A stretch of 64,000 nucleotides of DNA from Oculina patagonica (GCF_052425735.1 NC_135763.1:32302001-32366000); one strand, 5' to 3'; numbered from the stretch's first letter, positions 2,860 to 26,868 are shown. The notes: generated by a model not told the origin, from the sequence alone. Numbers and translations are program-made.

Positions 2860-5160
2860 CATCTGACGTTTGCATTTAAATAAAGTTCTTACCTTATCTA
2901 TCTTTTCTTATTTATAACAATACAGCGAGGAAATAAAGAGAAGCGTCAGGTTCTTGCACAAGCTGTAAAACACCTGAAGTTTATTCACTGGTCCTTCAAC
3001 TGCATTTAAGGGCATAAACAACAGTTTTAACGGAGAGGATCTACATATACAACTCTACTAGTTAAAAAGGATCACTCTTGCAATTGTTTATGTCGGTGGT
3101 CTTTGTTTTTAGGTCAAGTTTTAACAAGGAAAATGGTGTCATTAATTATTGATCAGGTGGTTCGGTGTTATTATTCAAATCTTCGGTCTTCAGAAAAAAA
3201 GTCGCTTTTTTCGACTTCGCATTTTGAGACTGAAGTGTTCTATTCCAAGAAACTATAACATAACAGGTAAATTGGGCTAAAATTACTAAAGATTCAGCTT
3301 TTACCGTCAGAAGAGCACTGTGGATTTTCAAATATATAGTAAGTCTAAGCTATAGTCCTCCGTTTTGTAATGTTTTCCACAACGGGAGTCCTAGTTCGCG
3401 CATAAGAAACAAAAACTCTGGCACTTACCAAAAGGATCAATAGGTCAACTTTTAATATTTTCATAGTTTTTATTTGTTATCTTTTGTTTTGTTTTTTTAT
3501 ATTCATTATTATGTATTGAAATAATCACAATTAATTGACGTTTGCATAACAATATAATACAACGGGTAAATAAAGAGAAACGTCAGGTTCTTGCACCAAG
3601 GTGTAAAACACCTGAAGTGTATTCATTGGTCCTTCAACTGCATGTAAGCAAATAAACAACAGTTTTAAAACGGAGAATATACAACTCTATTTAGTTAAAC
3701 AAACACTTTTGCCGTTGTTAATGTTGGTGGTCTTTGTTTTTAGGTCAAGTTTTAAAAAGGAAAATGATGTCATTAATTATTTAATTGATCAGGCGGTAAG
3801 GTGTTGTTATTCAAATCTTTCACGGTCTTCCAAGAAATAAAGGGACGTTTTTTTTTTCGACAGTTCATTTTGAGACTGAAGTGTTCTATTCCAAGAATTC
3901 ATATCAAAACTGGTAAATTGACCTTAAATTACTGAAGATTTAGCTTTTTACTGTCAAAAGTACAACGTAGATTTATTTAAATATATAGTAAGTCTAAGCT
4001 ATAGTCCTTTGTTTTGTAATATTTTCCACAGAAGAAAGTCCCAGTTCACGCTTAAGAAAAAAAACTCTGGCTCTTACCAAAAAGATCAATAGGTCAACTT
4101 TTACTATTTTTCATTTTTTTTTTTTGCTATCTTTTCTGTCTTTTATTATTATTTTATATTTAAATACTTATAATTAACTGACGTTTGCATAACAATACAA
4201 TACAGCGAGAAAATAAAGAGAAACGTCAGGTTCTTGCACAAGCTGTAAAACACCTGAATTTTATTTACTAATCCTTTAAATGCATGTAAGCAAAGAAACA
4301 ACAGTTTTAAAACGGAAAGGAGCAACATAGACAACGATATTATTTAAACAAGTACTGTTGATGTTGTTAATGTCGATGGTCTTTGTTGTAGGGTAAGGTT
4401 TTAAAAAACGAAAACGATGTCATTAATTATTCACAAGAGAGGGTGAATTTGTTATAGATCATGCGGCTAGGTGTAATTATTCTAATCTTTGGTCTTCTGA
4501 GAAAGGGACGTGTTTTTTGCAGCGCGAGTTCTCATTTTGAGACTCAAGTGTTCTATTCCAAAAAAATGTAGCATAACAGGTAAATTGCCCTTAAATTACT
4601 GAAGATTCATCTTCTTATCATCAGAAGTACAAAGTGGATTTTCAAATATATAGTTAGCCCCTGTCCCCACTAACCCGGGTAAATATGAAACGCATCTTTT
4701 TTTGAAACGGCGTTTTTGCTCACCGAAAGCGGTACTTTTCAAAAACGCTTTCCAAGGTGGGGTACATTTAAAAACGCCGGCGAAAACGGGACTTTTTGTG
4801 GCACAGTTATTTGATCAGTTCTTTTTCACAAAAGGTTTAACTAAGCTTAACAAAAGCTTTGTGCATGCGTTGTGACTCTGCGAGCGATTAAGCGTATCAT
4901 TTTCAAAATTTACCCGGGTTAATGTGAACGGAAAACATCTTTAATGGCGTTTTAAATTTTCTTCGTTTTCAAATTTACTGGGTTATTGTGGACAGGGCCT
5001 AAGTCTTAGCTAGTCCTTCGTTTTGTAGTTTTTTTTTTTCCCACAAGAGGAAGTCCCAGTTCGCGCAGTACTGAGAAACAAAAACTCTGGCACTCACAAA
5101 AAGATCAATGGGTCACCTTTTACTTTTTCTTTTTTTTTTCAGGATTTCCTATCTCGTTTA
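2860..5160. repeat. Tandem repeat, three copies of a ~620-660 bp unit
   Basis: cgtcaggttcttgcac, ttttgagact(g/c)aagtgttctattccaa and aaaaactctggc each recur three times (units begin ~2860, ~3530, ~4175). Confidence 0.85.
4657..4999. mobile_element. PIF/Harbinger-like MITE inserted in the third repeat unit
   Basis: TIRs gcccctgtccccactaacccgggtaaat / atttactgggttattgtggacagggcc, flanks tta/taa; units 1 and 2 show the empty site tatagtaagtc. Confidence 0.85.
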
Positions 5161-7044
5161 TTTTTTATTATTTTCGATTCAGAGTTGACGTTCCAACTGT
5201 AGTGTTTGCAATTCTTGTTTAGTCTTTATATGATAAATTTTCTTCGTTAGAAGCACGGCTGCAAAAGGTTACTTTAAAGTTGTTCAATCTTAATTCAGTA
5301 TATGTAAAATCGTTTTTTATTCAGCTTTAGTTTATTGAATATACTGATGAACTTGTTTAAATAATCATCGAAGTTTCTTCTTCAGATAACAAATTTGCCA
5401 TATATAAGATAATTTTTCTTTAAGAAAGCTTAAAAGAGGGGCCGTAAGGGGGTTTCTCGTGAAACGTGATTGCGTGTTTTTATTCTCCGTGATCTGTGAT
5501 TACGAAATATTAAAATCCGTGAACTGTGAATAACATGCTTGTCGTGACACGTGAAAGCAAAAAATTATTTTTCGATAACCGTGAAACTTGACTAAAATTC
5601 TTCACTTTTTCCGTGAAAACCGACCTACCGTGCAAAGATGACCCCTTATGATGTTGCAAATTGAAACTCTGACCGACTCAGACGCGCGATTTGCGTGATG
5701 GCTAAATACTTGACCACTTGACAGATTGAGAAGATTGTAAAACAAACAGGCAGAAGCCGAATCAAGGACATCAAGGGGTCAGATAACCCCAGAAGACAAC
5801 GATGTCTTTCTTTTTCGATGTCGCGTACATGTTAAATCACGCAATCATTCTAACTCATTTTGGCCAAGCTCACGCTAAAATTCAGTGTCAAAAAGTCATG
5901 GAGGTCGTGGGCGTCAAACAAATTTCTGTTATAGAAGGCGCCGTTTTCTACGTGGATCCCAAATCTGCAGGATCACTGGGTTTCCTCGGAGGGAAAGAAC
6001 GAGTCAGGATACCACTGACCGAGGCGCATTTCTCTTTGGAAGCGCTTAAAAAACATATAGTCGACTATGCGGGCCTGAAGACCGAGGCCGAGAAACGTGG
6101 TGTCGGTTCTTCAATAGAAGTTAAACTTTTTCGGCTGGCAAAGACCCCTGAAGGAACCAAAGCCTTTTCTATAAACACGCAGGCACAGTGGGACGTAGAA
6201 AGACCGCTATTCGGAGAATCGTCAGTTTTACAAGGTGGGTATTGTTGCTAACATTTGTAACTATATCTGGCTGTCCCCACATGCTTGATTGATGCAGCTG
6301 GGTATATCCTATTACAACTGACCTTACTCACATGGTCTTTAATGTAATTTAGTTTAAAGAGAGTGATAAAACTTATTACATGTATCTTAACTTTCGTAGC
6401 GCATTAGTCTTCACACAACACCCCCCTTTAATGTGTATGTAATAAACAGGCTTTCGTACGGCTTTTACAAGAGATACAGACTTTTTTTTCTCGCAATGCC
6501 TCCGCAAAATGTTTTCGTTTAAATGTTCACGGCATTTAATGACATACAGAAACTGGGAATCTGGAAAAAGTTCAACTGATTTCCATAGTCAACCAAAACA
6601 AACAAATAAAACAAGACAAGACAAGGCAAAAGATTACAAGAGTTTATTTGTGAGTTTAGCTAGGTTTTTAAATAGCAGATAAGTGAAGTATATTATGAAG
6701 GACATCACACTTCATAGTATTTCCTTCCTTTTTCGTGCCATGCATGTGGCTAATGTTATGTTTTGTGACTTTCCTTTTAGTCAATGTTCTCAAAAGGGAA
6801 GTAGTTTTTGCGAAGGATTCCCCAGTAATTAAGATAACCCTCGCGGCCGACAGTGGTGCCAGTTCAAGTCAGACTTCAGAACAACAACAGAGAAAACGAC
6901 AACAGGGAGGTGGAAGAAAAAGATCAGCAACAAAATTAGAAGATGACAAGCTTGTGAAACGTTTGAAGTTGGGCGAAACTGTGGCTCGGAATGAAAGGCA
7001 GTTGAAAATGTTGGAAGACCTGAATTTAGGTATGTGCGTTTTAA

Positions 7045-7065
7045 GTAATAATAGTAATAATAATA

Positions 7066-7130
<65 letters not shown>

Positions 7131-7133
7131 TAA
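7045..7133. repeat. (AAT)n microsatellite in intron 2 of the transposase gene
   Basis: Direct run of aat units. Confidence 0.95.
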
Positions 7134-8025
7134 AAAAATATTGATTCCTTGCTTACTGGCGCAATTCAATGCATTTTTTTGTAGCACTTGAGAGTATGTC
7201 CAACAGCAAAGCAATCAACGAATTTACCATCAGATGTGGACGTTGTGACAAGTTAAAAATTGTCCCCACGGACAGGACGCCACAAGCAAAAGCACAGTAT
7301 TTCAAGAAAAGTGAGTGACTAATGTAGTACAACAGGTCATAACACCTGATACTAAAGTAAGAAAACATATTTAAAATACCTTGCTGACAGGAAATAAACT
7401 GACTTCACAACAGCAGCAAAAGCTTATACAACACGTTTAAATAATGTTAAATCTTCTATATTGAAGCATTAAATCAAACGTTCTTCTAATGAACAGACAA
7501 TGAACATTAAACGTGCTTATTTTTGGTTACTAAATTGTAAATTTATAATACGTTATGTCTTGTCGCCCAACAGAACACTATGACAGTGCATGCCAAAACC
7601 GCCAAATTCAGGACACAAATGCAAAGAAGAACAGTGCAACAACAGCTGGAATGCAAAAAAACATGGATGCTTTCCTTAAAAAGTGCAGCAAAAACCTGAT
7701 AAAGACGATAAAGTGGAGAAGCAATCTGAAGGAAGCACTGCATCGTCCGCCAATGTACCCAAAGAAATGTCTACGGAGACTAAGGATGGCAGCGATGACA
7801 GTGATAGAGACCAAGATATAGACGCGTAAGAATTATTTAAAGACCTTCCCAGGTTTTGAATGCTAGCTCACGCGGAGCAAATGACTATATTTACTTCTGA
7901 GGCGAGTTTTATTGAAACGTTTTTGTGCACAAGCATGTTTTCACTTCGTTAGCGAATAACATCGTGTCTTTTTTGGAGGAATGTATATTTTGTTATGTTT
8001 TGATAATTGTAATGTTTTTTAATAC

Positions 8026-8456
8026 ATGTATATGGTGTACAAGGCCCTTCATGCGAAAGCTCCTCCTTACATCTCTGGCCTTTTGAAGGCCAAGCCTGTT
8101 GGTCGGTACAACCTGCGTTCCGATGGCCATGATATGCTAGTTGTCCCTAAGACAATGCTGAAAACTTTTGGGGATAGAGCCTTTGCCAAGGCAGGCCCCT
8201 CCCTGTGGAATGAGCTTCCTGTTGACATTCGCAAAGCGTCATCAGTGGAGACTTTTAAAAGTCAATTGAAGACTTTCCTTTTTAAGAAAGCATTTCGCGT
8301 TTAAGCGTTTTAACTTTTCAATCACACTGTTTCTAGTTTGATTTGTATGTAGGTTCATTCTAATTTTTATATTTTTATATTATTTTTACATATAGTAAAC
8401 AGCGCTTTAGAATATTTATAGTTTTTAGCGCTATATAAATGTATAAATTATTATAT
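8026..8456 (+). mobile_element. 5'-truncated L2/CR1-group LINE (ORF2 C-terminus and 3' UTR) inside intron 4 of the transposase gene
   Basis: KALHAKAPPYIS...YNLRS...FGDRAF...GPSLWNELP...FKSQLKTFLF*, then an agcgct...agcgctatataaat stem and a tta tail typical of L2. Confidence 0.85.
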
Positions 8457-9985
8457 AACGTTATTTGTCTTATTTGTAATTACGTTTGGCTTAATTATGT
8501 AAAGAATACACAAAAGGCACATGATTACAACCATTAAAGATACATAGCCTTTCGAATTGCTATGATCGTGTAGTGATTTTAGCCGCATTGTAATCTACAG
8601 GTTTCAAGACAAAATAGCTGAAGCTTCTGAAATTGACTTTGGAGATGTGCAGTTTGATAGTGATAGGGAAATTGCATCAGAGAACGAGCCTGAAAGAGGA
8701 AGCGACTGCCCTACCGCTTCAGAGCAAAGCTACAGCACCGATTCCGACCATAATGAACAGCTCACGGATAGTGACATCGACCCAGAGTACGCTATATTCC
8801 CAATCTCGTTTGCGAAAGCGGACGAGGTATGCGTCAGACTGAACGATTTAATACAAAGTGGTAGAATACCTAAAGACAAAATACTTTACAAGTATCTGGA
8901 TTCAGTGACACACGCTATGATTGATCCAAACCATGAATTTGATGAAGAAGTAGTACAATTTTTTAATTCCATCAAATTTCTTGGAGGCGAAAGAACTGTT
9001 AACTTTGTCCGGGGACCAATGTGGTACGGATGTGGTAAAGGAGGTGAACTAAGTCCAGAATGCGCCAAACCAAATCTTGGTGGGCCATCAAGGACAACGA
9101 GAAGTAAGCGCTCTTCTGGCTATACAACCAAGTCTGGCGTAGTAAAACCTTGGCTTGAGTCATTTCTCCAGCTGTCAGAAGACGCACTTGATGTGAAGCC
9201 GTTGATTGCATCAACAATCCTAAAAGTGTATGGCGTTGCTATGGAGAATGATGGTACTGCTTTGAAACCGGCCATACAGTATGACGAGAAGCAGCAGATC
9301 AATGTTGGTCTAAAAGATAGAGCTGACATTCGATTTGTCAACTCAAATCCAATGCCCAAACCCGAGTTTCTGAAGGCAAACATTGTATCAGAAGCAAATA
9401 TTTCTTATCTTTCCACTACCGATAACAATGTGGCGATGCCCGTCAGTGTACGTTATAAGCCCAAGGCAGGAAAGAGTGGAGAAGAAGGTAAAGATCCCAA
9501 GTGAAGAGGTTACTGTTATTGCTGGAACAGGAAGCGAAGAAAATTCCAACGGTAAAGCCGAGAGTGCCTGCTTTTCTCAGCCTATGGGCATTTGTGTTGA
9601 GTGCGACAAAAACATTTTTGTAACTGACGCGCAAGCTGGCACTGTCAAATTAATCACAACAATAGAAGGAACTGTAGAGTTCTTAAGACATTTGGGACTT
9701 CTCTACAAAGCGTTTTCTATCCATTTAAAGCACCAAAAGGCACAAAAGCTCTCTTTAGATGAGGCTATTTCGAAACTCGAAACGTCAGACAAATTCTTAA
9801 AGGAAACAGTTGGAAATGTGATGGGGATCCTTGAGAAAACATGCAAAGAGGGGCGGTAAGAGAAACGGTGTAAAACTTATGTCCATTTGTGCTTCTAGCT
9901 TTTAAAAGTCATTTGTTTATTAACTATATATTATTTGTTTTGTTTATTAGTTGGGTCATGTGACTTACACTGACAGCCTTCAGTC

Positions 9986-12519
9986 ATGTCAGAGTCAGCT
10001 GACGTTGCCGTGACAACAATACTCACCACCCTCATAATTGCGGACATTATTGGTAACTGCCTCGTTATCATCGTCATAAGGAGAAATCGAGATATGAGGT
10101 ATGCTGAGTATGTTGTACTGTTAAGACAGCTTTTTAAATGGTGAAACGAACAACAAGATATTTTAAACGAGATCCAACCCTGTGATTACCACTATGACCA
10201 TCATAAAATTTCTCCCAAAGAAACTTAGTAAAAGAAAATCAAAAGTTAATTTCAATCAAAAAGTTTGTTAACATTGTTGTCAAAAAACACTCACATAGTC
10301 CTTTATTCCAAAAGCGGACGCAAGGCTTCACAGTATAGTCATTCCTCATATATAGTGGGGTTTTGAATGAAAATTCAACGTGTTCATGTGATCAGCTTTT
10401 GGCTCTCCCACAACTGGATCAAAGGTTGTTTCTGGAGACTCACTATATGCTGATGTATTTTCAATTGGCGCTTGTCCACCATCCATATTTCTTGGTGCTC
10501 GCGACTTGACTTGAACACAGGATTTCTTCTTTGTTCCACGCTCGTGTTACATTTCATATTTTCTCAGAGTAGTAACAGTTTTGACTCCTCTACAGCTGCT
10601 CTTATCAGCACTAATAAAAGCGTCAGTATATTGGTAGACTTGATCATATTACTATTGACATAATCTTAACATTAATTTCACAGGACTTCAATCGATTATC
10701 TACTTGTGAACCTAGCCATATCAGACATCACGTTTGCGGTGTTTGTAACACCGAATCACATTTTCAATAAAACCTTCACCCACCCAGAAGGTGCCACTGG
10801 TTCAGAATTAAGCACATTTGTGACAGCCGGAAACGTTGCATGGCTGGGGGCGGCTTCCTCGTCTGTCACTCTGGTTGCTATCGCCGTTGAACGATACTAC
10901 ACGGTCATGTGCCCTCTTGGTAGCAAAGGAAAACTTACCAAGCGAAAAGTCAAGGTTAGTGAGCGGGAAGGGAACAGCAATGAGGACGCTTTCAAGATCC
11001 TTTATTTAAAGTAATACATGACGCCATGTATTTTGTTTTATCGCACAAATAATTGGACCTTCTACTTCTCAACTGCCGCTACTACTCCTAATTCTATAGT
11101 GTCTGTCCATCTGCTCCGTGAATTGCTTTGATTACAGCTTTTATGCTACTGCTCCACGACTGCTGGTACTCGAGCTCCTTCTCCTACAACTGTTTCTCCT
11201 GCTCCATCTACTATACTACCACTACCACTACCACTACCACTACCACTACCACTACCACTACCACTACCACTACCACTACCACTACCACTACCACTGCCAC
11301 TGTCACTGTCACTGTCACTTCCACTTCCACTTCCACTACTCCTACCACTACCACTACCACTGCCACTGTCACTTCCGCTGCCACTGTCACTTCCCCTCCC
11401 TGCCGCTGCCGCTGCCGCTGCCGCTGCCGCTGCCGCGCCCGCCCCCTGCCGCTGCCGCTGCCGCTGCCGCTGCCGCTGCCGCTGCCGCTACTACTGCTGC
11501 GACTGCTGCTTTCACTTGACAAAAGAGAATCCGTTACGTTACATTGTCTACCCCAAAAACCATTTTTTAAAAACTTCTAGCGCAATATAAATTGACGTCA
11601 AACTTAATTCTGACACAAAATACACCCATTTCAGATAATTCTTCCTTGCTGTTGGATCTTTTCAGTGGCTTTAAACATGCCACTGTTCCTGGTTTCAACA
11701 TTCCACAAATCAATTGGCGATTGCAAATGGGACTGGCCTGAGAGTTGGATGGGCGGAGCATACGACACAGCTTGGCTTGTACTGTTGGCTATTATTCCTC
11801 TGATTGTGATGACTGGCTTATACTCCAGAGTGGTACACATGTTGTGGTTTAAGCGTAACGATGGCCATGAACTCGCCTTACGACAAAAGGTAGGACAAAT
11901 AAGAATGTTAAAGGTAATAACGTCTTGATAGTAGGATATTAGCGAGAGTGTGAGATCAGCATGTTTAGAGTTTTTATATAGTTAGTTTAAGTTTTCGTTG
12001 AGAAGACACTTACAACATTGTCTCTATTCACCAGTGTGCACAAATTGGTAACGTCCGTGATCCTATTTACTTAATGGGAACCATTCCCCCCTCTCCCCCG
12101 CCGGTGTTTTGAGCAAACTGTGTTGGGCGCTAATGGCAAATCCTGAACTTACTCTTTGTTCCTTGTATTTTCAGGGAGTTTTAAAAGTACGGAAACGGGT
12201 CACATTGAGTGTGATCACTGTCAGTGCCATATTTGGAGTCTGTTGGATTGGTGGCTTATTAACCTACATCTTAAGCTACTATGACATCGACATGTTTGGG
12301 TCCGCCTCATACGCCATTTCCGACACCCTGTTTATGTTTAATTCCGCTGTAAACCCTTTTGTTTATTGTATGATAAATGAACGGTACAGGGAGAAGATCA
12401 AAGGAATGTTATGCTGCTTCCGTGCATCCAGAGTGCATTCATCAGGCGAAATATGCAGCGTCGAGCTACCCTGCAACACCTCTCACGTGACCCGCACTGC
12501 AGGAGGGTGCATGGGATAG
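9986..12519 (+). CDS. Four-exon class A GPCR, neuropeptide-receptor-like, 327 aa
   Basis: Exons 9986-10098, 10684-10954, 11635-11889, 12175-12519; GT-AG, phases 2,0,0, total 984 nt. Motifs GN (TM1), NLAISD, ERY, NSAVNPFVY. Confidence 0.9.
11060..11515. repeat. Compound hexamer microsatellite (CTACCA)n to (CTGCCG)n in GPCR intron 2
   Basis: Visible tandem hexamers; explains the poly-HY, poly-T and poly-LP ORFs. Confidence 0.95.
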
Positions 12520-13795: not shown

Positions 13796-14370
13796 CATTC
13801 AGGTCACGATATGTTGAAACTCGTTAGTACACGGATGGATCATTCTTTAGATGTGTAAGCAAGAAGCGACGCAATAATATATCGGGAATTGTATATTGTA
13901 AAAGGGAAGAGAGCTTAGGCTTCTCGAGAACGTATATCAAAACTAAGCATGTCACCAGATTTGCGGTTTTGAGAAACAATATTTAGCAGACCCCTGATTT
14001 AATTATATAGAATATAGATTTTAAAAACAACTTTTTTATGAAGACAGCGCTCTGTGGGTCTTTGAACGTCAATTAAAGAAAAGAAAAAAAAACGGAAAAA
14101 GTAGCCAAACGACAAAAAAGGAAATTGAGAGCTCTGGAGATGAAAAGAATAGGCTGAGCACTCGTAACGTCAGCAGCATGAAGGTCAAAACACGGGATGT
14201 CCATTTGCAAAACGCAAATGCACATTACAAGATGAATACCATTTCTTGAAGTTTTGCCAGCGATACATTACTTTAACTCGGTAGATATTGATTGATTTTT
14301 TCCTTAAATTTACATGATCAGTTTATAGAATAATCTTTATTCGAAGCAGACATAAAAACATCATGTCCAC

Positions 14371-18844: not shown

Positions 18845-20950
18845 ACACACGTTTTAACCAGGAGGTCCAGGAATCCTCTATAATATTGTCATTGCTAAAG
18901 AAGCCCTGTCTTTCCTATTACAAACGTCTATTAATACCAACCGTGCAACCGATATGTCAATTTGAGGAACTAAAATAAATAAATAAATAAATAAAAACCA
19001 AACTTAATATTTACAGTATAGCAGATTATAAAAATAACTAATTGACGACTCGTTCAGGCAGTGAGACCTCGATAATAATATTGTACCTAGTCAAAAGACC
19101 CTCGTTATCTTATCACAATCGTCTATTTATACCAACAATGTAACTGATATGTCATTTCGAGGAGCAACACTTTTCTTAATTTTTGTATAGTGCACTATAA
19201 AAATAACTTGTTAGCGACTCGCTCAGGAAATGAGAACTCAATAAAGTAAAACAACAGCTCAATCCAAGCAAAAGCGTACTTATACCGTACTTTGTAATCG
19301 AGTTTTAAACTAAATTTCTTAATGCATTTTAACCAGGCGGTCTAGGAAACCTCTGAAATATTGTGCATCGTTAAAAGAGCCGAGTAATCTTAACGCAATC
19401 GTCCATTTTTACCAACCGTGTGACTTTATTTGAGGAACAGCACTTAATTTTAATTATGACAGATTATAAAAATAACTCGTTTACGACTTGGTCAGGCAGT
19501 GAGACCTTAATAAAGAAAACAACCGCAGCTCATGTCCAAGCTTACAAGGCTCGTTATTTCTGTACTTAGCTAGCTTCTTAATATTACATTTATCATTTAA
19601 CATTAACATTCTATAAACGAATTTTAAATTTAATTTCTCATCGCATTTTAACAACGCGGTTCAGGAAATCTCTGCAGCAATATTACACCTTGTTAAAAGA
19701 GTCTCGTTATCTTATCATAATCGTTTATTTATAACAACCGTGACTGATATGTCATTTTGAGGAGCAACACTTTTTTTTATTTTTGTATAGTAGATTATAA
19801 AAATAACTTGTTTACGACTCGCTCAGAAAATGAGACCTCAGAAACGAAAAACAGCAGCTTCTGTCAAAGCTTACAAGCGTCATTCAGTTTCTATAGTCAG
19901 CTAAATCCTCTATAATGCATTGACATTCTTTAAACGAGTTTTAATTTAAATTTCTCGATACATTTTAGTCATTTTAGACAGGCGATCCAGGAATTCTCTG
20001 TAATATTGAACCTCGTTAAAAGACCCTCGTTATCATATCACAAACGTCTATTAATACCAACCGTGTAACTGATATGTCAATTCACGGTGGGCACAAAGTG
20101 ACCCAAAAACGCTCACCTTCATTCATCTTTTTCGTTTTTGATACTGGTTACCTGAAATTTTGTATAAATATGGAACTCGTCATTCTGAAAAATCGTATGT
20201 TTTTTGTTTTTCGAATTTCGAATTTTTTGGCGGGAAAATGACGTCACAAAGTTGGCGCCAAATTTTTTTTTAATTAGTATGGAACATTTTTTGACAGTTT
20301 CTGAAAGAACTTGTCGCAAAGATCTTGAAACTGAAAAAAAATTCTGAGATATGTCAATCTAATCAAAAGTTATCGCTAATTGAAGTTTGAATTTCCCGCC
20401 ATTTTGTTACTAAAAATAGCTCAAAATAGCGGAAAACTCAAACTTCAATGCACCATAACTTTGGTTTGGATTGACGTATTTCAGAATTTTTTTCAATTTT
20501 AGGATCTTTGTGACAAGTTCGAATTCTTTCAGAAACTGTCATAAAATGTTCCACATGAATTAAAAAAAAAATTGGCGTCAACTTTGTGACGTCATTTTCC
20601 CGCCAAAAAATTCGAAATTCGAAAAACAAAAAACATACGATTTTTCAGAATGACGAGTTCTATATTTATGCAAAATTTCAGGTAGCCAGTATCAAAAACG
20701 AAAAAGATGAATGAAGGTGAGCGTTTTAGGGTCACTTTGTGCCCACCGTAATTTGAAAAAAATAACACTTAATTTTTAATTATAATAAATTATAAAAATA
20801 ACTTGTTTATGACCCGCTCAGGCAATAAGACCTTAATAAAGGAAAACAGCAGCTTCTGTCCAAGCTTAAAACCTCAAAAGTTATTTCCATCGTCTTCTAG
20901 CTCCTTATTAAACAATGCATTGACATTCTATAAACTACGAGTTTAAAATT
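18845..20950. repeat. Degenerate tandem repeat, ~230-330 bp unit, about five copies
   Basis: Recurrent gatatgtca.tttgagga, attataaaaataact and gactcg.tcagg...tgagacct. Confidence 0.8.
20083..20750. mobile_element. Long palindromic MITE with CACGGTG termini (Chapaev/Transib-like)
   Basis: ~300 bp near-perfect inverted arms; flanks aatt; neighbouring repeat units show the empty site gatatgtcaatttgagg. Confidence 0.85.
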
Positions 20951-21419
20951 GTTAAAAACAACTTTAATCTGTGCATGATGTTTGGTTTTGCACGCGGATT
21001 GCTTGATCACTTATTGAGATGTGCGGCGACACGATATCGAAACGTCTGTAAAATTTTCAAAGCAAGGGAGCTACGGCTTTACAATCCTGTCACAAACGTA
21101 CTATTATCAATACTTAATCTCTTATACAAGCCTGAACATGTAAGTAGAATTATTTTACGCTTATAACATAAGATTGGTATTGACTGTCAATGCTGTTTTC
21201 CGGGGGTGACTCTTAAGCCCTTGGGGAGGGGGAGCCTTCGTCGGGAATTTTGAAATAAAAACCTAATAGGCTCTAGAACCTCGCGTTGTGGGCGTGGCTC
21301 AATTCATTTTCACCCCTAGGAGTTACTAATTGTAAAAGGGGAAATTTACTGACACTGACATTTATTTTATGGCTTAAAAGGGTCGGGTAGCAGCTCTTGC
21401 AAGGTATGACACGAAGAGT

Positions 21420-22732
21420 CACGTCCAGAAATGCATGCAACGCGGAAAATGGCAACCTCGTTCCCAGGGATTTTTCGAAATTTCTCCAAAGACCGACATG
21501 AATTTGATTTTGAGGAAAAAATCATATTCTCCAAATTCGAGGCATCAGATCACATTCGCCAATTTCGAGGCCGACATGTATGTACTTTAGCTTACCTTCT
21601 CTAATTTGTTTTTATTCTGACTCATGTCTAAAGAACGAGCAAAAAATGAATTATCCTTCTTTATGTTGGAGAGGAAAATCAATCAACTGATTTGAATTTC
21701 AGCAAAAATTAAAATTAAACATTGCACGGAGATTGAGTCTCTGCTTTCATATAATTTATGGAAGTCATTGTTTTAAATTTTCAAGATATGTATGGTAGAA
21801 TGCAAACCGCGGTCTAATGATGAGAAATATGCGAGTGAATGGAGTATGATGTAAGTTCTGTTACAAACATATCTGTATTAGTTTTCCATTCAGGCCACAG
21901 AAAGCTTCCTTCACACACAGCTGAAAATAACAGTCAGCCAAGTCAAACCCTTACAGAGAATATTCGGGACATACGCTTTCAGTCTGGTAAATTTTATAAA
22001 ATATTGCCAAATTCATCATATTAGTTAAATTCGTCAAATCTGTCAACATGGCAGGCCTGTATGAGCTGATGTAATTTACATAATTTTGGCGGTTTGACAA
22101 ATTTGACGAAATTTTGCCACATTTGTCCCATCCCTCAAAATTGTCAAATCTGTCAACTTAGCTGGCATCTAAATTAATCGAGCTAATTTTCATAGGAGTG
22201 GCAGTTCAAAGTTGACGAAATTTCGCCATACTCGTCACATTTGTCAAATCCGTCTACGTGGCAAGCCCGCATAAATTGAGGTAATTGACATCAACATTTT
22301 GGATGCAGGGGACCACGCAATAAATTTTGCTCTAATGCCATTGTACGAGCCTTGCAATCAATCTGACGCCACATTCGTCAATTTGTCAACGAAGCAGGTT
22401 ATGCACTGGGTGAGCTTATTTCATAAGTGTGGCAGTTAGACAAATTTGATGAAATTTGGCCAAATTCGTCAAATCCGTCAAATCCGTCAGCATGGCAGGC
22501 ATGTATAAGAGATGAGCTTATTTTTATAAGTTAAACGAATTTTTAAAACGAAATTCAGTAGCCAAATTTGTCAAAACTGTCAAATGTGCGAATTTGACGA
22601 TATTTTGCCAACATTGTCAAAACTGTCAAATATGTCCACATGGTGGGCTTACATGAGCTCTCGCCAAAACCCAAGGCAAAATTTTGTCAAATCCGCAATT
22701 TTCGATGTTTTGTGCATTTCTGGACATAAGTG
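21420..22732. mobile_element. TIR element with internal tgtcaaat satellite
   Basis: Left cacgtccagaaatgca vs right tgcatttctggacataagtg (13-bp exact core); 22020-22700 is built from (t/c)gtcaaat / ttgacgaaat repeats. Confidence 0.6.
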
Positions 22733-24851: not shown

Positions 24852-26868
24852 AAACAATTAGCGGAATTTGTTTATAGCTAGTTTTTTTTTTCTTCTGGTT
24901 TATGTGTTTCAGTGGTTTATGTAGAACTTCCACCTTGCGTTTCAGATCAATTTGCATGCCCAAGCCTTGTTGGGTGTGTTTATCAAATACATTAAAAAAG
25001 AAACGTCAATGTGAGAGAGCTTAGTTGTTGACGCTATACGTTCCTAGTGCCAATTATTATTAACATATCAAGTACTGAATAGCAATTTGGAAAGTTTATT
25101 TATTTAATTATTTATTTATTTTTGTATGTTAACTGGATGCTGGTGTCTCACAGCTATCTAAACAAATTTTGCCCAAATCCCATTTCCCAGCCTTATTGTT
25201 TTCCCTTAATTTCCACCAAACTCAGTCGCAGTTCTAATGATTTTTGTTTGTGATTCCCAGTCCCAGTGATCCAAATCTCATTTTCTCAATGAAAATTTGC
25301 CCAAATCCTAATTCTCATTTTACCCCATTTTACTCCCTTCAGGCCCCTCTAAACAGGGAACAACTTTCACTGACCTATTGAGGTATGACCAGAGATGACT
25401 AATTCAACCAAGTAGTAGTAATTGACCGATCATTGACAGTTATCAAACAGCTCTAAAGCAAAATCGACAATGCCAAAGTGTAAAGAAGAAAGAAAGTGTA
25501 GTGAAAGATTCAACATTGTCACTCCCTTGGGACAGAATTCTCGCAAACGACAGTGGAGGAAATTGCTTCATCTGGCAGCATCGAGAAGGAATCGTGGGTG
25601 CATGACACATATGCATGATACCGACTGAAATTCTTTGGCGGTTCGCATTGGTGACTGCAACTGCGTCTGTGGTCTCTGTGAGTAAGACGGAATTTATGCC
25701 TCCTTGGAGTCTTAGAGGAGTTGTCAGAGGAACTGATGGCTGTCTGAGATCGAGAAAATGTTACAGTCAGCGGTCATATATGCTTCATGGAAAAAAAAAA
25801 AATAGGAGTTTCAGTGGTGTGCAGGAATACCGGACTGCACCAATTCATTTACAACTACCATGCATGATCCCCTGTAGGCGCGTCTTACAGGAGAACTGGC
25901 CATTGTTTATACTCCCAGCTTATCAAAAAGCCTTCGTCTTCTAGAATTTAGCTTCCACTGACATTTACAATAATTAATTCCAATACTGTATTGTTAAACG
26001 AGCTATCGTTTAGGGGAGGGAAGTAAGGCATTTAATTTACTTCAGTCTTTTTTACTTATCAATTTTGAGGTGAGCCAACAGAAAACATACACCTCCGGCA
26101 CATTTTCCTCACGGAGTAAAGGCTAAAAGGAAGTGAAAGTGAATAGAAAACACCAGAACTTTTATGAAGGCTTAAATATATTACACAACTAAAAATGAAC
26201 TTTTGTACCACTAATTATAATGTCATGTTTGATGGACAGTTATGGAAAGAGCATCTTGAATGAAAACTGCAGGTTGTAACGGACATAAAACGGTATTGCT
26301 CCTGAGAAGTCACGCGAAGTATCGCCGGCAAGCTTGGGAAAATGTTTATACAAACCTGATTAACAAGTAAAGGATCTTTATGTTTTCCATTTGTAATGTG
26401 AAATACGTTACTGTTTCATTCTTAACTTGCCTTAAACTCGAGATGCCAGTTAGCTGCCTTAAATTTACGATTTGAATCTTCTTGTTTTTCGCCCACTGAG
26501 TATTATCTTTTTACTACAAATGGAATGGTTGAATTCTTAACAGAAGCCGGACTGCGATGAACAAATAAAATAGATGCTCGCAAGATGAATATCATGTTAA
26601 GATATTTTGCCACGGGTTTAATGACATTAGAAGCCACTTCCTTTCCGTGCAGTGCTTCATGTTAATACATATTGAGTCATTCTTTATGAATTTACAGGAT
26701 CAGGTGAAATAAATTACTGCAAACTAGGAGAAAGACAAAAAAAATCAGAAACTCGTTTCTTTAAATCGTGTCAGTTGTCGTTCCAAAGGCAAAAAAAAGA
26801 CCATTTAAACCCCCTTTCTTAGTTTGTGTTTAAAGAGTTGAACATTATCAGAAATTTCCTCATTGTAT

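Follow-up and report, generated by a model that had tools for sequence, protein, structure and literature searches.

To our knowledge, no eukaryotic transposase other than that of the P element is known to require GTP, and the P enzyme does so via an insertion domain. The catalytic residues of the P protein are D230, D303, D339-x2-H and E531, and THAP9 has the same layout, with the insertion domain placed between the D-x2-H and the Glu (PMC8230255). Transposases of this group (PDB 6p5a; PF12017, PF21787-PF21789) consist of a helical region and, after it, an RNase H-like DDE domain, with one Asp on beta1, another after beta4, the D-x2-H after beta5 and the Glu on a later helix, separated from the D-x2-H by a large insertion domain, and they are encoded by multi-exon genes in elements with short terminal inverted repeats (TIRs) and subterminal repeats. 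The same organization is predicted for a transposon family that we describe here from a stretch of 64,000 nucleotides of Oculina patagonica DNA (GCF_052425735.1 NC_135763.1:32302001-32366000; hereafter the window, with positions counted from its first letter). Between 5436 and about 9850, this window very probably contains the dead, non-autonomous remains of a DNA transposon of the cut-and-paste type, in whose family a propeller of NHL repeats carrying a SAP motif (SAP-NHL) lies at the position of the GTP-binding insertion domain of P.

The family differs from P and THAP9 in having no THAP domain and a C2HC finger (C-x2-C-x22-H-x3/4-C), in a ten-Cys module of approximately 65–90 amino acids between the first two Asp residues, in the SAP-bearing NHL propeller that occupies the insertion position, with no detectable GTP-binding domain, and in its TIRs of 15–17 bp, which start with GAGGGG. 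The window copy comprises the 5' two-thirds of such a TIR-bounded element (5436 to about 9850); an intact element would be approximately 6.0–6.4 kb long, with one five-exon gene for a predicted transposase of approximately 1150–1370 amino acids. The window is AT-rich eukaryotic DNA (36–43% GC), and the nearest relatives of the stretch were found in Porites lobata and similar coral assemblies. An initial annotation, made from the sequence alone, had set the start of a transposase-like gene at 5898; the exons do begin there, but the element itself begins upstream, at 5436, as judged by both its TIR and DNA homology.

Full-length relatives and the ends of the element

A HMMER search with the 300-amino-acid core encoded in the window returned 481 proteins, 263 of them at E <= 1e-10 and 67 at E <= 1e-30. 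Full-length relatives of 1100–1370 amino acids come from corals, mussels, a priapulid and marine metagenomes, and their database names are solely "hypothetical" or "uncharacterized". By BLASTP, the two pieces that are joined in the window matched one and the same 1156-amino-acid protein (P0008), the core at residues 23–300 and the NHL piece at residues 774–879. Core and NHL piece share one open reading frame (ORF) in at least 13 long members, including P0005, P0006, P0027 and P0029, so that the association of the NHL segment with the DGTALKP region, on which the initial annotation had staked its reading, is a property of P0008 and a dozen other full-length members. A second family, present at the eight loci L128–L135 of one assembly, encodes P0190, which is 47% identical to P0008. 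Members group into clusters at 90% identity, several of which comprise tens to hundreds of sequences, and many of the matches are fragmentary, as fits a repeat family. A search of literature full text, which covered neither Repbase nor Dfam, where a prior entry is possible, found no description of an NHL-bearing transposase; the family, for which no published description was found, appears to have recently active copies in other marine invertebrates. One full-length member, P0192, has been deposited as 'MAG: hypothetical protein, Sedimenticola sp.' (NCBI), and its contig is probably host contamination of a bacterial bin.

The ends of the element were defined by comparing copies in different places. 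DNA homology between the P. lobata copy L005 and the copy L006 starts and stops abruptly at L005 positions 9634 and 15681, and both ends are an inverted repeat, giving TIRs of 15–17 bp and termini of the form GAGGGG...CCCCTC. Target site duplications (TSDs) of 6 bp flank nine of ten complete copies from two families, namely L005, L006 and seven of the eight loci L128–L135, and their sequences are varied (TTGTCA and TGAGAA for L005 and L006; GGTAAA, AAAACA, TACAAA, ACCTTC, TTGTGA, AGGGTA and AAGGCT for the others). No matching TSD is present at the remaining copy, L132, whose flank may have been rearranged. All eight of the latter loci (ENA ERZ26692694) carry an identical ORF of 1159 amino acids in eight different genomic contexts, with at least 99.76% DNA identity over the 6351-bp element, and their homology stops at GAGGGGGGGCAAGGG...CCCTTGCCCCCCCTC; because eight loci of one assembly share an identical ORF, this family looks as if it has moved recently or still moves. 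Full-length copies are thus multi-copy and bounded by TIRs and TSDs, as the initial annotation's assignment to a transposon implied. An alternative delimitation, with a 4-bp TSD (TGTC, GAGA) and an 18-bp TIR starting AGAG, was rejected, as eight further copies show 6 bp and GAGGGG; the shorter duplication is an artefact that arises because both Porites-type TSDs begin with T and end with A.

Subterminal repeats accompany these ends. The pentamer CGTGA occurs eight times in the first 205 nucleotides of the window copy, against 0.17 expected (Poisson P about 2e-11), and CGTGA clusters lie at both ends of L005 and of L128, at near-identical offsets and always on the coding strand.

Further scans for ends gave little. 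No TIR pair was detected by an inverted-repeat scan of the window, because the 3' end of the element is missing. The sequence AGAGGGGCCTGAAGGGAG at 25333–25350 (minus strand) matches the TIR with three mismatches (0.01 expected per window); it was rejected as the 3' end, having no CGTGA, no adjoining homology and no matching TSD, and may be the end of a related miniature inverted-repeat transposable element (MITE) or a chance match. Apart from two one-ended copies, a TIR scan of metagenome contigs yielded mostly chance 15-mer matches, and neither L007 nor L008 is long enough to contain both element ends. Inverted repeats around the ORF of P0089 in L001 were likewise discarded as TIRs, being an unrelated, MITE-like palindromic repeat of approximately 60 bp (AAAACAAAGGCGC.GATCAGC...) present at 5507–5571, 9955–10013 and 14245–14303 of that locus. 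Two further features of the loci L006 and L005 were also recorded: a long terminal repeat (LTR) retrotransposon (RVT_1, RNase H, rve) inserted in intron 2 of the L006 element at 3856–8910, and a gene with THAP and DDE_Tnp_4 domains (Harbinger-type) near the L005 element, at 20266–22221.

Gene model and decay of the window copy

The features of the window copy are as follows, with the strand in brackets where one applies.

5430–5435: putative 5' copy of the TSD, TTAAAA, proposed only by analogy with the nine of ten complete copies elsewhere; its 3' partner has gone with the truncated end
5436–5452 (+): 5' TIR, GAGGGGCCGTAAGGGGG, an exact match to the L005 TIR; homology with the DNA of L005 and L006 begins here
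5453–5640 (+): subterminal region with the eight CGTGA repeats, candidate transposase-binding sites
5898–6234 (+): exon 1, N-terminal domain of approximately 112 amino acids; amino acid identity 65–68% to L005 and L006 and 45% to L128
6781–7029 (+): exon 2, in frame with exon 1; a basic stretch resembling a nuclear localization signal (NLS), and RNERQ; kept in L005, L006, L128 and the N-terminus of Priapulus P0027
7185–7310 (+): exon 3, first half of the finger, C-x2-C; amino acid identity 88–90% to L005 and L006, 55% to L128 and 39–40% to P0027 residues 27–68
7574–7825 (+): exon 4, with the H-x4-C that completes the finger and an acidic linker after it; frame broken; acceptor and GTAAGA donor conserved in L005 and L006
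7830–8560: enlarged intron 4 with approximately 500 bp of foreign sequence, including a 92-amino-acid ORF at 8026–8304; L005 and L006 have approximately 380 bp here, with no homology
8601–9486 (+): start of the large exon, with acidic linker, a helical region resembling a helix-turn-helix (HTH), and RNase H strands beta1–beta3; 49% identity to P0008 residues 23–300
9485–9486: junction of the 1.41-kb internal deletion, where left and right homology meet with 2–3 nucleotides of microhomology
9487–9847 (+): what is left of the final NHL blade(s), with the helix that comes next, read in a different frame; 54% identity to P0008 residues 774–879 and 90% DNA identity to L005 14180–14542
9848–9880: 3' truncation point, where homology to L005 and L006 fades; approximately 1.14 kb gone

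Exon coordinates were checked base by base and are 5898–6234 (337 nucleotides), 6781–7029 (249), 7185–7310 (126), 7574–7825 (252) and 8601–9501 (901). The window sequence has four predicted introns with GT donors and AG acceptors in phases 1, 1, 1 and 2, precisely as initially annotated, and exons 1–4 form a single open frame across the three phase-1 introns. Within exon 4, one change of frame is needed to reach the phase-2 donor GACGC|gtaaga, from which the join to exon 5 reads ...DIDA|FQDKIAE. The initial annotation had attributed this break to a single nucleotide in a run of A; that part did not hold, as the acidic half of exon 4 differs from L005 by several indels that add up to +20 nucleotides in the window copy, and the break is not assignable to one base of the run. 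Manual reading of the aligned sequence shows exon 4 of L005 to be open, with the same acceptor and donor. The finger, CGRC-x22-HYDSAC (C-x2-C-x22-H-x4-C), is divided by intron 3 exactly as had been claimed, with CGRC in exon 3 and HYDSAC in exon 4; it is of C2HC type, not THAP, with BED-like spacing. The basic stretch of exon 2 consists of QQRKRQQGGGRKR and KLVKRLKL, and the exon also holds the conserved RNERQ motif. The large exon has 300 open codons and includes ENDGTALKPAIQYDEKQQINVGL at about 9244–9312, with the codon for the first catalytic Asp at 9250–9252 (ENDGTALKP). At 9485/9486 the frame changes and VIAGTG...FSQPMGICVECDKNIFVTD continues in the ORF at 9383–9859, in agreement with the initial annotation.

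The exons recur in elements elsewhere, in the same order. Exons 1–3 and the finger half of exon 4 show 59–90% amino acid identity in L005 and L006, and exons 1–3 with the acidic tail of exon 4 show 39–55% in L128, from another assembly, while the start of the large exon has 81% DNA identity to L005 11842–12771. Introns are far less conserved. In P. lobata, the gene model P0155 (CAH3117184) links exons 1 and 2 to the core, and the Priapulus protein P0027 (XP_014674326), whose residues 27–68 match the zinc-finger exon, has an N-terminus reading ...RNERQ...FRCGIC-x22-HFDNC...MFLK. Profile searches of these parts were largely negative: the exon 1 domain had no Pfam or Atlas match, and the finger region had no Pfam match. 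Searched singly against Pfam, the window pieces, which are too short and too diverged, gave nothing significant, the NHL piece reaching only E 0.23.

Relative to L005, the window copy keeps 5435–5617 (TIR and subterminal repeats), 5923–6246 (exon 1), 6770–7316 (exons 2 and 3), 7570–7676 (exon 4) and 8564–9486 (the first 0.9 kb of the large exon), after which 9485–9847 corresponds to L005 14180–14542. The internal deletion of 1.41 kb, equivalent to L005 12771–14180 or about 470 amino acids, takes out the Cys cluster, the second Asp, the D-x2-H, the SAP motif and most propeller blades, and the truncation at about 9847–9880 takes out the helix of the catalytic Glu, the C-terminal tail and the 3' TIR. 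Homology searches with L005 and L006 did not find the 3' end of the element anywhere in the window. The copy had been described as internally deleted and 3'-truncated, and it is both; as its sequence reads, it is neither autonomous nor mobilisable, because it has one TIR only and no catalytic domain.

Two readings would take the stretch out of the realm of mobile DNA altogether. Were it a gene of the host, or the pseudogene of an NHL protein domesticated from a transposase, then the multi-exon structure, the conserved splice sites and the gene models in annotated genomes (P. lobata CAH3117184 and Priapulus XP_014674326) would follow naturally, but such a gene would account poorly for complete copies that are bounded by TIRs, with 6-bp TSDs in nine of ten, for homology between copies that ends exactly at the TIRs, for eight identical ORFs in unrelated contexts of one assembly, or for clusters of tens to hundreds at 90% identity with many fragmentary copies, and we regard this reading as very improbable. 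Still harder to sustain, to the point of being negligible, is the idea that unrelated ORFs only happen to join up as five exons, with the NHL-like piece derived from a neighbouring gene: it would agree with the failure of any window piece alone to give a significant Pfam match, but three other elements carry all of the pieces, conserved and in collinear order, and the idea is refuted by the full-length proteins in which core and NHL piece share one ORF.

Two observations concern the surroundings of the gene. The insert of approximately 500 bp in intron 4, whose 92-amino-acid ORF (8026–8304, plus strand) ends ...LWNELPVDIRKASSVETFKSQLKTFLFKKAFRV and has no Pfam match, resembles the tail of a retroposon or of a short interspersed nuclear element (SINE) that has inserted into the dead copy. 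A rhodopsin-type G protein-coupled receptor (GPCR) gene lies at 9986–11014 (plus strand), approximately 130 bp downstream of the truncated element; MSESADVAV... opens the first exon of this gene, and one of its later exons matches 7tm_1 (E 4e-9).

The catalytic core and the inserted propeller

The protein family was examined with an alignment of 32 members and an AlphaFold2 model of P0008, which had a mean predicted local distance difference test (pLDDT) score of 81 and a predicted template modelling (pTM) score of 0.78. Since searches with the whole protein returned only beta-propellers, the N-terminal half (residues 66–495) was folded separately, with a pLDDT of 81.5. In Foldseek comparisons with the PDB, this half matched the Drosophila P transposase best (6p5a and 6pe2, E 1e-6 and 2e-6), followed by TnsB (1.4e-2) and then by other DDE transposases, integrases and RNase H; among Swiss-Prot models, human THAP9 (7e-8) and the P transposase (9e-7) came first and IS1081 (4.5e-3) next. 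The lead of P and THAP9 over the next fold matches is four to five orders of magnitude. VIA alignment against the PDB gave Z 8.5 for 6p5a over 260 residues (P residues 134–426), against Z 6–8 for retroviral integrase cores. All named neighbours in a shape search of the ESM Atlas were TNP-like (P/THAP9) clusters, with about 190–280 residues aligned, and a protein-language search with the window core also gave TNP-like clusters. The only recurrent Pfam domains across members were TNP-like_RNaseH_N (seven of 32, best E 4e-6), NHL and SAP, and PF21787 is precomputed for the Mytilus protein P0200. The models thus support the P-like fold that had been suggested for the core, and a helical DNA-binding region followed by an RNase H domain most like that of the P transposase and THAP9 is predicted for the family.

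The alignment and model together predict a catalytic domain of RNase H-like fold that carries the signature D, D, D-x2-H, E. D219, in ENDGTALKP, lies on beta1 and is conserved in 31 of 32 rows; D386, in SxDCExxNK, follows just after beta4 (28 of 29 rows); the motif P-D418-x2-H421-x2-K424...N432-W433 comes directly after beta5 (strand 414–417), with D418 in 25 of 27 rows and both H421 and K424 in 26 of 26; and E938, in VENL[H/F]..[H/R], is in a helix (13 of 14 rows). The middle that the window copy has lost therefore carries the DxxH and a further acidic residue that had been sought there (SxDCExxN and PD-x2-H-x2-K...NW), and the lost tail holds the Glu of ENL[H/F]...[H/R]. Spacing from first to second Asp is 167 residues in this family vs 73 in P, from second Asp to D-x2-H 32 vs 36, and from D-x2-H to Glu 520 vs 192. 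Ten near-invariant Cys residues at 312–375, each present in at least 29 of 32 rows, lie between the first and second Asp, in a module that probably binds zinc and that makes up the added length of this interval; the longer interval ahead of the Glu is taken up by the SAP-NHL propeller together with the helices flanking it.

Residues 492–828 of P0008 form a six-bladed NHL propeller in the model, situated between the D-x2-H (418–421) and the Glu (938), that is, at the position of the insertion domain, where the initial annotation had suspected the NHL repeats to lie. The propeller has VIA Z scores of 26–28 against the NHL domains of TRIM71, Lin41 and NHLRC2, and the family profile matches PDB sequences of SOQ1 (E 8e-17) and NHLRC2 (E 5e-15). 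The reading of the last motif of the window copy as an NHL repeat is supported, full-length relatives having the complete propeller and the window copy only its last blade region. A SAP-like pair of helices at approximately 594–637 is looped out between blades, with SAP matches in seven of the 32 members and weak matches to SAP structures in the PDB. The propeller shares its six-bladed fold, with a root-mean-square deviation of 2.5–3 Å over about 250 residues, with TRIM-NHL proteins (TRIM71/LIN-41, Brat, TRIM2/3), NHLRC2 and SOQ1; it differs from all of these in lying inside a transposase catalytic domain, in the SAP helix-extended-helix looped between its blades, and in having no RING, B-box or thioredoxin partner.

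Classification and significance of the family

Together, sequence and models support a P-related lineage, but not strict membership of the P superfamily. The initial annotation had gone further, placing a non-THAP finger and internal NHL repeats in a lineage of the P superfamily itself; the P-related fold, the C2HC finger and the NHL propeller are supported, and the superfamily rank is the less certain part. Several results weigh against a close tie to P. The TNP-like_RNaseH_N match in P0029, the sole member with displayed bits, scores 22.2 against a gathering score of 24.6, and no sequence match to the P transposase was obtained in the PDB, even with the family profile. Template modelling scores (TM-scores) in the fold searches are modest, at 0.3–0.5, because of insertions. 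Pfam searches found neither a THAP domain (PF05485) nor TNP-like_GBD (PF21788), the GTP-binding domain, in any member, and the TSD is 6 bp vs 7–8 bp in P. Furthermore, within the C/DxxH group (hAT, P, MuDR, Kolobok, Dada), P/THAP9 alone offers a close structure or Pfam model, so that a nearer kinship to Kolobok or Dada is not separable by fold search.

The family could accordingly be a TIR transposon of another C/DxxH superfamily, Kolobok or Dada, or of a separate one, its likeness to P and THAP9 reflecting shared group ancestry only. Kolobok, like this family, has a C/DxxH-type DDE transposase and occurs in cnidarians and molluscs (PMC9587614, PMC6004289); the 5'-GA...TC-3' termini obey the Kolobok 5'-RR...YY-3' rule, the TIRs of Xenopus Kolobok start with AGG or AGA, and some Kolobok lineages carry a zinc finger just after the first Asp (PMC9587614). 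Yet the Kolobok TSD is TTAA, 4 bp, and those of this family are 6 bp and varied. In Kolobok proteins a THAP domain is usual, as is a finger, H2CH or other, downstream of the C/DxxH, the finger between C/DxxH and Glu being present in all lineages but Kolobok1 (PMC9587614), whereas in the 32-member alignment we noted no conserved Cys/His cluster beyond residue 433, and its Cys cluster (312–375) precedes the second Asp. For Dada, the parallels are a TSD of 6–7 bp, unlike the about 8 bp of P, the presence of introns, long DxxH transposases of 1400 amino acids or so, and marine invertebrate hosts (PMC3706591); described Dada elements differ in having no TIRs, in inserting into small nuclear RNA (snRNA) or transfer RNA (tRNA) genes, and in a D-D spacing of 68 with CCCC/CCHC fingers elsewhere, as against TIRs of 15–17 bp and varied, non-genic-looking targets here. 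Neither superfamily has a solved structure or Pfam model, and both were thus unable to compete in our searches; on the other hand, the motifs of this family do not appear in the alignments published for Kolobok and Dada, its spacing of 32 from second Asp to DxxH is near the 36 of P, and its sole recurrent transposase profile match is P/THAP9. Overall, we consider this reading rather unlikely, though not negligible. Slightly better, and still tentative, are the prospects of a bolder proposal: that the family is an undescribed sister lineage of P/THAP9, of superfamily level, living in marine invertebrates (Cnidaria, Mollusca and Priapulida) and distinguished by the exchange of its insertion domain for a SAP-NHL module, a multi-zinc module in the RNase H core and a 6-bp stagger, with L128–L135 still active.

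On the reading that we prefer, of a P-related cut-and-paste transposon, the DDE site would cut and rejoin the element ends with a 6-bp stagger. The C2HC finger, the helical region or both may read the CGTGA subterminal repeats, and since CGTGA has the same orientation at both ends, these would not be equivalent. DNA is bound by SAP motifs, and RNA by the NHL propellers of Brat and LIN-41; for this reason, we propose that the SAP-NHL module may take over the DNA-holding or complex-assembly role of the GTP-binding insertion domain of P. The internal deletion of the window copy could have arisen through interrupted (abortive) gap repair after excision, a source of deletions that is well known for P elements.

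The window copy itself is a dead fragment and has no functional importance. The family is of wider relevance, as its copies in coral and mussel genomes are probably annotated wrongly as NHL genes of the host, given that a widespread, recently active family is named only "hypothetical protein"; the TIRs, TSD and gene model defined here allow its proper masking and annotation. If the family is indeed a sister lineage of P/THAP9, a member of the L128–L135 group would be usable for studies of transpososome assembly or as a gene-transfer vector. The exchange of the GTP-binding domain for a SAP motif and an NHL propeller, a fold that binds nucleic acid or protein, in a P-related lineage would amount to a natural domain swap, through which the role of the insertion domain in holding DNA, in assembly or in regulation becomes testable.

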